DNA of 63,507 nucleotides, the filler included, from Neoconidiobolus thromboides FSU 785 (Eukaryota > Fungi > Entomophthoromycota), in NCBI GenBank assembly GCA_025603075.1. It is 5 parts of 5 records of this genome, joined end to end, with 100 filler letters (N's around TTAATTAATTAA, not from the genome) between each part and the next. Parts side by side here need not be neighbours in the genome. Positions count along the whole stretch, not along the records: positions 1 to 26,935 come from MU626504.1; 4 more parts are not named here. One strand, written 5' to 3'. The translations under genes were made by a program, and so were the position numbers. Positions 18,195 through 24,180 of the stretch are shown here, piece by piece (within the stretch, counting starts at the first letter, position 1; every line of letters starts with the position of its first letter). A model generated the notes under the pieces. That model saw only the letters and a list, made by a program, of their open reading frames with translations, did not search any database and was not told the DNA's origin.

Positions 18195-18773
18195 CTTTGT
18201 TATTAATCCTTATTTAAATTTTGTATATATAACTTTTCAACAAAAATATGATTGTGTGATAATAACAAAACAGAAATAAAGATGTTAGATATTAAGAATT
18301 TTAGGATTCAAGAGTAAAAAAACTTAAAAAGATTAACAAGTTAAATAGATGAGTTTTCAAATGACTAATTAGTTGACATTAATGTGAATGAGTGATTTGT
18401 TTTAAAATGGCTGAAGTGGGAGAGTTATTAAGTTTAGTTTTTTGTATAAAAGTTGATGTTCAACATAAATAATAGTAATAAAATTTTAGTGAGTTTGATA
18501 GAAATTAATACAATCCTGTTGTATTTAAGTATATTCCATTTTGTTTAATTCGTTATCATTCTTTTTTATTCAATTTAGAAATCATATAGAATATTAAAAT
18601 TTTGAAAGTTATTAAAAACCAAATTTAGTAAATTAAAATAAAATAAAAACTATTCAAATGAAATTAGTTTTAAAAATGAGATTAAAATCAGATAAAACAT
18701 TTAATAACAGATCAATTTATTTGTTAAAAAAATAAGCTAGATAAAAAATATAATAAAAATAAACAAAATTAAT

Positions 18774-20585
18774 CTAACGATTTAAGAACTTTGAATTAGG
18801 GGAAGAATCGGACATATTAAAGTCCTTAGGAATTTGATAGGAGATAAGATTAGGTACTTTAGTATATAAATAATCTCTATACAAACCACCTAATTTCATA
18901 GTAATAAAGGCTTTAAAATCAGTAGTTGGACTTTCTAACCAAAGTTTTCGAGTTAAACAATTTTCTTTAGGTAATAATTGATCTAACTCATTACGAACAA
19001 TTTCCCAACCTAATCCATTATAATGTAAATTTAAACTTCGAATTACTCGATGTAAATGCATCATAAACATAGTATGATAAGCTACATGATGCATATCTTC
19101 ACTATTTTTTGCAATTTGACAAGCTTCTGAATTCCATACATTTACTTGTAATCCAGTCACTTCCTTTAATTGAGTTTGATCTACTTTAATACCACCAAAA
19201 TCACGTACAGCAAAGCCAGTAATTTGATAATTATTATTATTATCTAATTTTAATCGACATAATACATTTTGTAAATGAGCTTCATAAGTTAAACCATATT
19301 TATAAACAGGAGTAGCAAAGGCTTTTAAATATTTTTGACAATAATTAGTAAAAAACTCAATACATTTAGCTTCTGTATTTAAATTCAATACTTTTTTCAT
19401 TACAGATATACCATCGGAATCAACTTCAGTTAATGCTGCTGTTACAATTAATTTTTCACCTTTTTGTTCACATTTTTGTTCAATTTCCTCTCTAATTAAA
19501 CAAGATAAATGTTTAGCAATATCGGAATCTTCATGTTTAGAAACAATAGAACCTACTTCATCCATTACCATTAAATTTTCAAAATCATCATTAATACGTT
19601 CATAAATAGGTCGAAAGTTGGGACCAACATGAGTTGTCCAGGGAGTAATTGTACGTAAAGCACTAGTTACTTTAATACCAACTGCTAATTTAAAACTATA
19701 ATTTGGTATCGAATCTAATACTACAGTTCTTAAGGCGGCCTGTGCTTTACTTTCTAATTTTTTACTTAATTGTTGGACAAAAGGAAATTTTTCTAAGATA
19801 TTGGGCATTTGTAATTCATGAATAAATATCAAAGCTTCCGTTTCTCTATTAATTTCATGTTTTAATTCTTCATATAAAGATTCAATAACTTGCTCATATT
19901 TTCCATTAATAGTGACTTGATCACGTGGTACTTTACATACAATGATTGTTGGATTTAATAAATTATTTTTTAATTCAATTGGCTGTAATGGAGGTAGAGC
20001 ATACCTTGACTTGTTCATTGGGTGAGTTGGATGACCTTCAACGATAGATTGTTCCCAATCAATTGCTTTAGAATGTTGAACATTTAATAAAGATTGTCTA
20101 TTTAAATAAGCATATTGTTGATGATCTACACTACATAATAATTCTTTACTTACTTTATTGACAATATTCATATCAAATTGATTCCATTTAGATATTAAAT
20201 TTAATATGAAATCTAAATCATTAATTTCAACAATATTTTCTTCCTTATTTTCATTAAAATAGTATAATGGAAATTGAATTTCTTGAGGATCTAATAGCCC
20301 AATTGAATAAATCTTATCTTGATTATTATTTCTAGTTTCATTAATTAATGGCATCTCTTTTAATCCAATAATAAACCCTTCTTCATATAACTTATCATGT
20401 TTTTGGTAAATTATACCATAATATTTATTATTATTAGATAGTTGATATTTACTCATAATAGAAGAAGAGACTAATTGAGTTTCTACCATACTTTCATTAA
20501 CAATACAAGATATCAATCTAGAAAACATAGCTTGTTTAGCTTGGGAATAAGAAGTATCCGTTGAATTTGAAGTTTTACTACTCAT
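18774..20585 (-). CDS. IucA/IucC-family NRPS-independent siderophore (NIS) synthetase, paralog 1 (rhizoferrin-synthetase-like)
   Basis: 603-aa intronless ORF with NIS motifs WEQSIVEGHPTHP, FKLAVGIKVTSALRT, YEAHLQN, AVRDFGG, FKAFITMKL. Confidence 0.9.
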   Translation of the reverse strand: MSSKTSNSTDTSYSQAKQAMFSRLISCIVNESMVETQLVSSSIMSKYQLSNNNKYYGIIYQKHDKLYEEGFIIGLKEMPLINETRNNNQDKIYSIGLLDPQEIQFPLYYFNENKEENIVEINDLDFILNLISKWNQFDMNIVNKVSKELLCSVDHQQYAYLNRQSLLNVQHSKAIDWEQSIVEGHPTHPMNKSRYALPPLQPIELKNNLLNPTIIVCKVPRDQVTINGKYEQVIESLYEELKHEINRETEALIFIHELQMPNILEKFPFVQQLSKKLESKAQAALRTVVLDSIPNYSFKLAVGIKVTSALRTITPWTTHVGPNFRPIYERINDDFENLMVMDEVGSIVSKHEDSDIAKHLSCLIREEIEQKCEQKGEKLIVTAALTEVDSDGISVMKKVLNLNTEAKCIEFFTNYCQKYLKAFATPVYKYGLTYEAHLQNVLCRLKLDNNNNYQITGFAVRDFGGIKVDQTQLKEVTGLQVNVWNSEACQIAKNSEDMHHVAYHTMFMMHLHRVIRSLNLHYNGLGWEIVRNELDQLLPKENCLTRKLWLESPTTDFKAFITMKLGGLYRDYLYTKVPNLISYQIPKDFNMSDSSPNSKFLNR

Positions 20586-21185
20586 TTTCTTAACACGATA
20601 TATATAAAATCTAATTTAAAATAATTTATTTTGTTTCAACTTGTTAAAGAATCGATTATATTTAGTTGACTTTAAATACTTTTTGTTTGACTAAGCAATT
20701 TAGAAAGATCACAGAATAAATTTTGATTGTTTCTTATCATCCAAATCAGATAAAACCCATACGATAATGTGTATTTTTAGTTTATCAGATAGAAGGTATT
20801 ATGACTTTTATAGTATAGAATATTATTTTATTCTAGATTGAACTAGATGTTATAGATAGCCTAATTAGAACATGTTAAAGATTAAATTTGTTGACTTAAT
20901 CCTTTATAATTAGATAATTGAAAATTCAATAAACTATTACAAAGATCTGATAAAATTAAAGTTAAATTTGATTGGTTGATTAATTTTAATCGACATTTAA
21001 TCAATATCTAACTGTTAATATGAAAAGTGTACATTAAGTATAGCTTATTCTTTAGTCTAGTTCTACTAGTCATAATAAACGCAAGGTTTTAAAATAAACT
21101 TGTAATCTTATTAATCTACTATATAAATAAATTTAGTTTATTATTTCTTTATCTGATAAAAACTATCATTAGCTTTTGTAATTAT

Positions 21186-21228
21186 AATAAGTAAAATAAG
21201 TAAAATAAGTAAAATAAGTAAAATAAGT
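21186..21228. repeat. 9-bp tandem repeat (AATAAGTAA)n in the divergent intergenic region
   Basis: aataagtaa repeated more than four times. Confidence 0.85.
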
Positions 21229-22033: not shown

Positions 22034-23213
22034 ATGGATTCATCACAATGTCCTATTACAAACAACAATAAATATGTATCCGTTGGATGGGATGCAGTAG
22101 GCTGGTCAAGTTTATTTGTAGTATTTAATATAATATTATCCCTCGCATTACAATTAAAAATGGAAGTCTCTCTTATAATAGCTAGTGTACGATGTTTAGC
22201 CCAATTAACTTTAATGGCTTATATATTAAAACCTGTGTTAGATTCAGATGAAATTTGGATCCCATTTTTGATGGCTGGTAAGTTACTTTATTCCTTATAT
22301 TATTCTATATAATTCTATATAATTCTATATTATTCTATATTATTCTATATTATTCTATATTATTCTATATTATTCTATATTATTCTATATTATTCTATTT
22401 TATTCTATTTTATTTACAAATTTTGATTTTTATAGCTATCTTTGTTATCTTAGCAAGTTATGAAACAGTATATCATCAATCAAAAGTGCGACATCGATCT
22501 ATGGTAAGTCATATTAGTTAATTTTTTATTTTAAATTAATTAATTAATCCTATTATCTCTAGTTAATTATAGTCTTTATCTCTATTTTAATTAGCAATGG
22601 AGTAGTTGGAATTATTGGTCTCGCCTGTATTATTAAAGTATTACCTTTTTGGCAACCTCAACAATTTATTCCTATTATCGGTATGTTGCTTGGTAACTCA
22701 ATGTCTGGTATGGCCGTTGGTATTTCCCATTGTTTACAAACACTTAGTACTCAAAAAGATAGTATAGAAATGTATCTTTCATATGGTAGTACGCGTTGGG
22801 AAGCTTCACGTCCCATTGCTATTCAATCCATACGATTAGGTATGATACCCACTATCAATGCTATGTGTGTGATGGGAATTATCTCCATTCCAGGGATGAT
22901 GACTGGTCAAATTTTAGGTGGAGCTGATGTATTGGATGCTGTAAGGTATCAACAAGTTACCATGTTTATGATATTATCATCTACTGCATTAGGTACTTTA
23001 TTATCTGTCTCAGGTGCACTATTTGTGTGTATTGATAGATATCATCGTCATAGAGCTGATCGTATTTATAATACTCCTGCTTGGCAAGAGGTACTTTATA
23101 TCAAATACGTGGCTACTCCAATTAGTAAAGGGTTTTTGAATATTAAAGCTATGTTCAAGAATAAGCAAGGTGGAGCTATTGATGTTAATGAAGCTTTTAG
23201 GGAAAAGAATTAG
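22034..23213 (+). CDS. fetB: UPF0014 family membrane protein (FetB/YbbM, plant STAR2/ALS3-like ABC permease subunit); 3 exons
   Basis: Exons 22034-22277, 22436-22503, 22563-23213 (GT-AG) splice to 320 aa; motifs ASVRCLAQLTLMAYIL, QFIPIIGMLLGNSM, MGIISIPGMMTGQILGG, AVRYQ are typical of UPF0014; symbol indicates family homology only. Confidence 0.85.
22301..22410. repeat. 10-bp minisatellite (TATTCTATAT)x11 in intron 1 of the FetB-like gene
   Basis: Direct tandem units with minor variants (aattctatat, tattctattt). Confidence 0.9.
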
Positions 23214-23439
23214 ATATTTGAAAAGTAGAATTAGTTATTGTTTTTTAGTAGAAGATATTACATTACAAGTTTAATAAAAATTTAAGTTGTTTTTTTTGTA
23301 TTCATTTTATTTATTCACTTAGTTTTACTTATTTTGAATCTTTATTTATTTAATAAATAGAAAACAAAAAGTTTTTAAGTCGATTTTAATTATAAAAATA
23401 AAAAATAAAAAATAAAAAATATTGAAATATTAAGCTGAG

Positions 23440-23523
23440 TTTTTGAATTTCATTTATTTTTTAAGCATTATTAAAAAGTGAAAAATTGTTAGTAAAATTC
23501 TTTAAAAAAGGCATTTTCATATG
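23440..23523 (-). mobile_element. MITE-like element, partial/degenerate
   Basis: aagtgaaaaattgttagtaaaattcttt...catatg core; limits approximate. Confidence 0.55.
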
Positions 23524-24180
23524 CTTATTTTGATTAATAAAATATCAATAAAATACTTTTATTTCAATTAAGAAACAAAAAAAATCAATATCTAGTTCAA
23601 CATATTAACTTCAATTATAAATAATTGATAATAATTAGTAACTTTTGTTAATTAAACTCTTATCCCTAATAATTAGAACTCATAAACCCTGTTTCTAATA
23701 AATTTGAGTTCATAAACTCTATTGTAAACTATAACAAATAGCCTAAACTAATTTTAGTTAAAGTATTTCTAAATTACTTTGAATAATAATTGATAAGTAA
23801 TCATGATAAACTAACAACATAACCCCAACCATCTAGATAAATGAATAATCTTTTAACCTTACACTAAAACTCATCTTAATCTTATAAGCCTCATTTTTAT
23901 TATGTACAATCATAATCACAGTGTTATCAGATATCCTATTTTATTCTTTCTATAAAAAAAAGCAATCAGATAAAATTTTGATATTTTTAACAATCATCAA
24001 GAACAAATTATAATCTAGGATTAGCCAATAATATAAAACTCAAACAATTAATATTTATCTGATGAAAATATCAATTTCTCTATTAAAAGTGAAGCATATA
24101 AAAACTTAATTTCAGAAACAATGAGAATGCAAAATTCGAGTTAATCTCTTTTCATTTTATTCTTTGAAAAATCCACTAAA

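Follow-up and report, generated by a model that had tools for sequence, protein, structure and literature searches.

Clustered ATCWGATAA sites, predicted operators of an iron-responsive GATA repressor, at a siderophore synthetase locus of Neoconidiobolus thromboides

Contig MU626504.1 of the insect-associated fungus Neoconidiobolus thromboides FSU 785 (Entomophthoromycotina; assembly GCA_025603075.1) carries two genes, NIS1 and NIS2, for IucA/IucC-family siderophore synthetases independent of nonribosomal peptide synthetases (NRPS-independent siderophore synthetases, NIS), and between them a gene for a FetB-like permease of the UPF0014 family. The window is a stretch of 63,507 nucleotides, filler included, whose positions 1 to 26,935 are this contig; the piece analysed is the entire contig. 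The subject of this report is a group of exact matches to the 9-mer ATCWGATAA, confined to the neighbourhood of these three genes, which are listed together with the genes in Table 1.

In both NIS proteins an IucA_IucC domain is followed by a C-terminal FhuF-like domain, and the genes are inverted paralogues whose proteins are 57% identical and whose DNA can be aligned, at 73-79% identity, only across coding blocks. The best NCBIfam family for the two proteins is FslA, associated with rhizoferrin biosynthesis, at a score far under its cut-off. Their closest relatives come from Basidiobolus (45% identity), Dimargaritales, Zoopagales, Kickxellales, Massospora and Glomeromycotina, and the Mucorales matches to NIS1 reach 32-36% identity; a phmmer search of the PDB found no relatives of NIS1 or of the FetB-like protein. 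Rhizoferrin is built from citrate and putrescine, and from these family relationships NIS1 and NIS2 are predicted to be rhizoferrin-type NIS siderophore synthetases, the product itself being a prediction. Entomophthorales are recorded as rhizoferrin producers (Thieken & Winkelmann 1992, as cited in PMC10500206), and little is known of rhizoferrin biology beyond the synthetase (2023 review, PMC10500206).

The FetB-like gene is interrupted by introns at 22277-22434 and 22503-22561, both with GT..AG borders, which are confirmed by spliced contigs from two RNA-like runs (X5 and X6) and are in agreement with the exon translations. Protein searches were made with exon 3 and then with the database's own 320-residue product P0121. 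The UPF0014 signature extends over the whole length of the protein. Its score against the FetB family TIGR00245 is 123 bits and falls short of the 410-bit equivalog cut-off, and it is therefore treated as a FetB homologue and not as an equivalog. The contig lacks a gene for a partner ATPase. UPF0014 proteins are widespread among early-diverging fungi, and the plant proteins ALS3 and STAR2 belong to the same family. Most of intron 1 is occupied by a 10-bp tandem array, TATATTATTC, in about 12 copies (22296-22414).

An exact search of both strands returned 10 strand matches at nine loci, all of them between 18687 and 24063, and no perfect match in the rest of the 26,935-bp contig. Every one of the nine sites that an initial annotation had listed by eye was recovered exactly, and its statement that no perfect match occurs elsewhere holds across the contig. 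The divergent promoter between NIS1 and the FetB-like gene (1,448 bp) contains five loci and the 967 bp before NIS2 three, while one is past the NIS1 stop codon, so that eight of the nine fall within two intergenic regions upstream of NIS synthetase genes. Within the divergent promoter, four of the five loci are closer to NIS1, which leaves S6 (21801) as the only one near the FetB-like gene. Two other runs (X3 and X4) yield DNA contigs that also cover the segments containing S5 and S7-S9, with zero or one difference, a comparison in which 40 of 317 variant positions are listed and long pieces are biased to low divergence.

Three smaller observations concern this locus. A perfect or near-perfect site stands just past the stop codon of both NIS paralogues (at 78 bp and 28 bp), and in Massospora one follows the NIS gene by about 500 bp (L005, 12187); such post-stop sites may be coincidence or a 3' element. 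There are two copies of an 11-mer GATC version of the motif, TAATCTGATCA, at 17688-17698 in the spacer downstream of NIS1 and at 21415-21425 in the divergent promoter. Adjoining S5 in the same promoter is a perfect 9-bp tandem array, AATAAGTAA, with 4.8 copies at 21186-21228.

Table 1. Genes, ATCWGATAA sites and other features of contig MU626504.1, and exact 9-mer counts at NIS orthologue loci of other fungi (upstream, the 2 kb before the NIS gene; elsewhere, the remainder of the locus).
Feature	Position	Strand	Remarks
NIS1	18774..20585	-	603 aa, single exon; Pfam IucA_IucC and FhuF-like (3.5e-27, 1.1e-09)
NIS2	24181..25926	+	581 aa; Pfam IucA_IucC and FhuF-like
FetB-like permease gene	22034..23213	+	320 aa (P0121); exons 22034-22276, 22435-22502, 22562-23213; Pfam UPF0014
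S1 ATCAGATAA	18687..18695	+	78 bp past NIS1 stop codon (3' flank); 1.7 kb upstream of next gene
S2 ATCAGATAA	20745..20753	+	159 bp upstream of NIS1 ATG; 13 bp past assembled NIS1 transcript end
S3 ATCTGATAA	20782..20790	-	196 bp upstream of NIS1 ATG; 50 bp past 5' end of NIS1 RNA contig
S4 ATCTGATAA	20945..20953	+	359 bp upstream of NIS1 ATG
S5 TTATCTGATAA	21149..21159	both, 21149(-)/21151(+)	full palindrome, one locus; middle of divergent promoter
S6 ATCTGATAA	21801..21809	+	224 bp upstream of FetB-like ATG; 39 bp upstream of 5' limit of FetB-like RNA contig (21848)
S7 ATCTGATAA	23924..23932	-	248 bp upstream of NIS2 ATG
S8 ATCAGATAA	23965..23973	+	207 bp upstream of NIS2 ATG; immediately 3' of TATAAAAAAAA run
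S9 ATCAGATAA	24055..24063	-	117 bp upstream of NIS2 ATG
Near-site ATCTGATAG	25955..25963	+	one mismatch, HGATAR still satisfied; 28 bp past NIS2 stop, mirroring S1
Five small paralogous genes, tandem	7822-8292, 9925-10438, 11748-12503, 13255-13749, 16592-16978	all -	
Dispersed ~100-nt repeat	~2899, 6669, 7435, 7547, 10726, 13038, 14302, 15594, 15783, 16203, 16392, 26171, 26457	both orientations	
tRNA-Asp (GTC)	18123-18194	-	between NIS1 and nearest mucin-like gene
Dimargaris cristalligena NIS locus	L003		upstream 2, elsewhere 0
Syncephalis plumigaleata NIS locus	L004		upstream 2, elsewhere 2
Massospora cicadina NIS locus	L005		upstream 2 (one palindromic, just 5' of tblastn-inferred coding start), elsewhere 1
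Rhizophagus irregularis NIS locus	L006		upstream 4 (within 180 bp), elsewhere 0
Mortierella alpina NIS locus	L008		upstream 3, elsewhere 0
Basidiobolus meristosporus NIS locus	L002		upstream 0, elsewhere 0
Syncephalastrum racemosum NIS locus	L007		upstream 0, elsewhere 0

Because the contig is AT-rich, with a GC content of 20-34% across 1-kb windows, the enrichment was retested with local models. In dinucleotide shuffles of the full contig the matches average 1.43 and never exceed 5, with none of 100 shuffles reaching 10, and local models predict 0.36-0.52 matches for the 5,581-bp cluster, in line with the rough expectation of about 0.4 given in the initial annotation. For the promoter set, defined as intergenic positions 20586-22033 and 23214-24180 (2,415 bp, 19.8% GC), Markov models of orders 0 to 3 trained on the same regions predict 0.16, 0.18, 0.28 and 0.80 matches against the 9 strand matches observed; the highest simulated count is 6, and 9 is reached in none of 2,000 simulations, the self-trained order-3 model included. 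An unbiased k-mer scan of the two intergenic regions ranks the words of the motif at the top for each k from 6 to 9, and the single word ATCTGATAA occurs five times in the promoter set, where 0.08 occurrences are expected, and not at all in the remaining 21 kb. The genome-wide frequency of the motif was approximated from the 21 kb of the same contig outside the cluster and from about 125 kb of flanking DNA of other species.

The signal resides in the perfect 9-mers. One-mismatch variants are marginally enriched (52 against 36 expected, the 10 perfect matches counted in, with 3 of 100 shuffles reaching 52) and were not counted as evidence, and an extended consensus, ATCWGATAAA, was rejected, as the extra A, present at nine of the ten sites here, is not kept in other species and probably reflects local A-richness. 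CCAAT-type boxes noted by eye, an ATTGG near 20971 and a CCAAT near 24024, are about as frequent as estimated from composition. The 20-nt flanks of the sites are mutually unrelated, and repeat searches recover only 15-18-nt similarities that consist of the motif and its A-rich flanks; the sites are thus independent of one another and did not arise by copying of a module.

The best case for a function of the sites, and for their link to NIS genes, is made by comparative sequence data, in which the exact 9-mer was counted at seven NIS orthologue loci from other early-diverging fungi (Table 1). The motif is present at the loci of five of the seven species, and the upstream 2 kb, which make up 10% of the sequence, hold 13 of the 16 motif loci (binomial P = 6e-11); expectations based on composition are 0.45 upstream, where 13 are observed, and 3.6 elsewhere, where 3 are observed. 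The Syncephalis upstream region holds four additional ATCWGATA words, and in GC-rich genomes the 9-mer sits in flanks that are themselves GC-rich and mutually unrelated. As to the arrangement of individual loci, two of the Rhizophagus sites overlap in tandem (ATCAGATAATCAGATAA, L006 9719-9735) and two more lie 150-170 bp upstream, all four in the same orientation, in a promoter that serves both the NIS gene and a gene for a Na+/H+ exchanger. At the Basidiobolus locus (L002), an ornithine decarboxylase gene (5715-7082, -) stands head-to-head with the NIS orthologue (~9734-11593, +), whose annotated start at 10001 appears from tblastn to have been placed some 270 bp downstream of the real one. 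Ornithine decarboxylase makes putrescine, a precursor of rhizoferrin.

NIS1, the FetB-like gene and NIS2 are all transcribed in at least one run (X5), whose contigs carry no expression levels. The NIS1 RNA contig from this run spans 18804-20732; RNA contigs do not mark true transcript ends, and all transcript boundaries given here are bounds only. The sites at this locus exist in numbers far beyond chance, are mutually independent, and lie in promoters near transcript 5' ends.

The SreA regulon of Aspergillus fumigatus is the source of the consensus ATCWGATAA, and the in-vivo sites of Urbs1 from Ustilago maydis and Fep1 from Schizosaccharomyces pombe fit it (Schrettl et al. 2008, PMC2610380). 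The initial annotation had described it as the site of ascomycete iron GATA factors; as an iron-GATA consensus it stands, and the fit of the basidiomycete Urbs1 site extends it beyond ascomycetes (PMC2610380). SreA possesses two GATA fingers around a Cys-rich region that is thought to sense iron (PMC10500206), and two-finger GATA proteins, as described for GATA-1 by Trainor et al. 1996 (cited in PMC2610380), read an inverted GAT half-site like the ATC extension.

With a probability of roughly three in four, the nine loci are operators of a predicted two-finger iron GATA repressor of the SreA/Fep1/Urbs1 type. One zinc finger of the predicted factor would read GATAA and the other the inverted GAT half-site. 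No GATA finger is encoded in this contig, the part of the genome covered, or in the fetched loci. Under iron sufficiency the iron-loaded factor would bind the sites upstream of NIS2 and those in the divergent promoter of NIS1 and the FetB-like gene, whereby both rhizoferrin-type synthetase genes would be shut off and the FetB-like permease gene probably as well; when iron is scarce, the factor would leave the DNA and the cluster would be derepressed. A conserved SreA-type code leads one to expect the motif upstream of orthologous NIS genes, as seen in five of seven cases. The proposal of the initial annotation that the same iron-GATA code operates in an early-diverging lineage is accordingly borne out as regards the DNA, by the promoter cluster at the NIS genes and by the 9-mer upstream of NIS genes in five of seven lineages, whereas the identity of the binding protein, repression as the direction of control and the dependence on iron are what we infer from it.

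Several points weigh against this interpretation. No perfect site is found at the NIS loci of Basidiobolus and Syncephalastrum. The background from the fungus's own genome amounts to only 21 kb, where five of about seven genes are paralogous and mucin-like. The SreA-like factor and the iron response are predicted ones, the analysis having covered this one contig of the genome. Finally, S7-S9 lie inside the sole assembled NIS2 transcript.

This last point bears on one alternative, namely that an SreA-like factor acts as an activator or dual regulator, or that the NIS2 sites act within a long 5' leader as a roadblock or in the choice of start site. The only assembled NIS2 transcript starts at 23674, so that S7-S9 fall within its leader, which is 507 nt or longer, and simple promoter occlusion therefore misfits NIS2 unless a second, proximal start is assumed. 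TATA-like runs near 23950 and 24096, downstream of the contig start, would allow such a start, and the long leader could reflect alternative start sites or a regulatory leader; the perfect site past the NIS1 stop codon and the near-site past that of NIS2 also speak for this alternative. Against this stand the nature of the contigs, which do not give true transcript ends, and the fact that all characterised members of the family repress iron uptake (PMC2610380, PMC10500206), and we consider a role of this kind unlikely.

About equally improbable is that the sites are real but serve another GATA factor, for instance a nitrogen regulator like AreA or a light regulator of the white-collar type, and answer to a signal other than iron. 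HGATAR is read by all fungal GATA factors, the cluster is also richer in plain GATA cores, with 42 of the contig's 130 GATAA words in 18600-24180, and GATA families have expanded in several early-diverging phyla (PMC12638772). What is enriched, however, is the longer, partly palindromic 9-mer in particular and not the GATA core; the literature gives the extended form as the hallmark of the iron regulators (PMC2610380), and the conserved association, in five other lineages, is with iron-acquisition genes. Effectively refuted is an origin by chance in AT-rich intergenic DNA, or by copying through a repeat or the NIS1/NIS2 duplication, since, for all that the intergenic DNA is about 20% GC, that NIS1 and NIS2 are an inverted duplication and that dispersed repeats of some 100 nt occur in the contig, no local simulation reaches the observed count, the remaining 21 kb of similar composition lack a perfect site, the flanks are unrelated, the duplication is detectable over coding blocks only, the dispersed repeat is devoid of the motif, and the cross-species recurrence holds in GC-rich genomes too.

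The place of the FetB-like gene in the predicted iron-GATA regulon is less clear. The initial annotation had taken the motif to tie this gene to the siderophore genes independently of protein homology. In its favour are the proximal site S6 and the adjacency of the genes; against it, four of the five sites in the divergent promoter are nearer NIS1, and the UPF0014 orthologues of three species, Entomophthora muscae, Rhizophagus irregularis and Dimargaris cristalligena, lack ATCWGATAA in the upstream region proper to each gene and are not adjacent to a NIS gene. The Rhizophagus UPF0014 locus does carry one palindromic site 3.6 kb upstream of that gene, but two other genes intervene, and a CCDC90-like gene begins only some 330 bp downstream of the site, and adjacency of NIS and UPF0014 genes was not found in any other fetched locus. 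The position between the synthetases, the common divergent promoter and the single proximal site are therefore suggestive only of a regulon link. Repression by iron would be a paradox for an exporter of iron, and if the gene is co-regulated, its substrate may more plausibly be a siderophore or siderophore precursor. The UPF0014 permease would then be a candidate component of rhizoferrin export or handling, and for the transport side of rhizoferrin biology the gene is a lead only.

Elements of such regulation have been reported outside Dikarya. SreA homologues are described from Mucor genomes (PMC7011435), an SreA element has been identified in silico in the promoter of Mucor lusitanicus rfs, whose mRNA is lowered by iron (PMC9226013), and two GATA factors homologous to SreA formed part of a study by DNA affinity purification sequencing in Rhizopus microsporus (PMC12638772). 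Because the Mucorales homologues and the Mucor rfs-promoter site are already published, the extension to an early-diverging lineage is incremental; for Zoopagomycota/Entomophthoromycotina, Glomeromycotina and Mortierellomycotina, a literature search found no report of regulation by iron GATA factors. The iron switch looks, from these sequences, ancient rather than new. It is possible, if somewhat short of an even chance, that an iron GATA repressor and its ATCWGATAA operators at siderophore genes predate the split between Dikarya and the zygomycete-grade lineages, meaning Zoopagomycota (including Entomophthoromycotina), Glomeromycotina and Mortierellomycotina, that they were kept even though the enzymes under their control are unrelated, and that the regulon of N. 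thromboides gained a UPF0014 permease. Apparently, the code read by a transcription factor can persist while the pathway under its control is exchanged for another. The control of rhizoferrin-type siderophore synthesis in non-Dikarya is almost uncharacterised, and the dense, conserved operator cluster is a concrete, testable predicted cis-element, with a motif that may be used for iron-regulon prediction in Zoopagomycota, in Glomeromycotina (arbuscular mycorrhizal fungi) and in Mortierellomycotina.

The remainder of the contig consists of five paralogous genes for Ser/Thr-rich secreted proteins, two small genes, a tRNA-Asp gene and the dispersed repeat, and no perfect ATCWGATAA is present in the promoters of these other genes. 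The tandem paralogues encode a signal peptide, a low-complexity Ser/Thr-rich body and a hydrophobic C-terminus, and resemble glycosylphosphatidylinositol-anchored mucin; they have no Pfam matches, and their 5' and 3' ends are conserved in DNA too. The dispersed repeat, with at least 13 copies in 27 kb and a core that contains TTGTTAGTAAAATTCTTAAACA, may be a miniature inverted-repeat transposable element or a short interspersed nuclear element. A fragment of it at 23473-23509, in the spacer between the FetB-like gene and NIS2, accounts for the more than 4,000-fold contig depth of DNA runs in the bin 23462-23648.

Among the closest known systems is the SreA regulon of A. fumigatus and A. nidulans, with the same 9-mer, several sites per promoter, siderophore and iron-uptake genes as targets, and divergent promoters common to cluster genes. 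Its targets are NRPS-dependent hydroxamate genes, whereas those in N. thromboides are NRPS-independent IucA/IucC carboxylate-type synthetases; regulator and iron response are proven there and are here predicted, and the eight loci in 2.4 kb are far above the mean enrichment of 5.4-fold in that regulon. The in-vivo sites of Urbs1 at sid1 in Ustilago maydis and of Fep1 at str1 and fio1-fip1 in Schizosaccharomyces pombe share the consensus, and fio1-fip1 is likewise a divergent promoter that governs two iron genes, although these are experimentally mapped sites of Dikarya and the present ones are predictions from Entomophthoromycotina. The middle protein is allied by its full-length signature with FetB/YbbM, the permease of the bacterial FetAB iron exporter, and is set apart from it by its low family score and the lack of a partner ATPase gene in the contig. 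The rfs gene of Mucor lusitanicus and Rhizopus delemar belongs to a homologous NIS enzyme family, and the Mucorales locus compared here, that of Syncephalastrum, is without a perfect site. The rfs synthetase is a single gene; N. thromboides, from another phylum-level lineage, possesses two inverted paralogues around a UPF0014 gene, with far denser sites. What is added to these systems is an unusually dense cluster of sites and a cross-phylum pattern at siderophore pathways that are not homologous.

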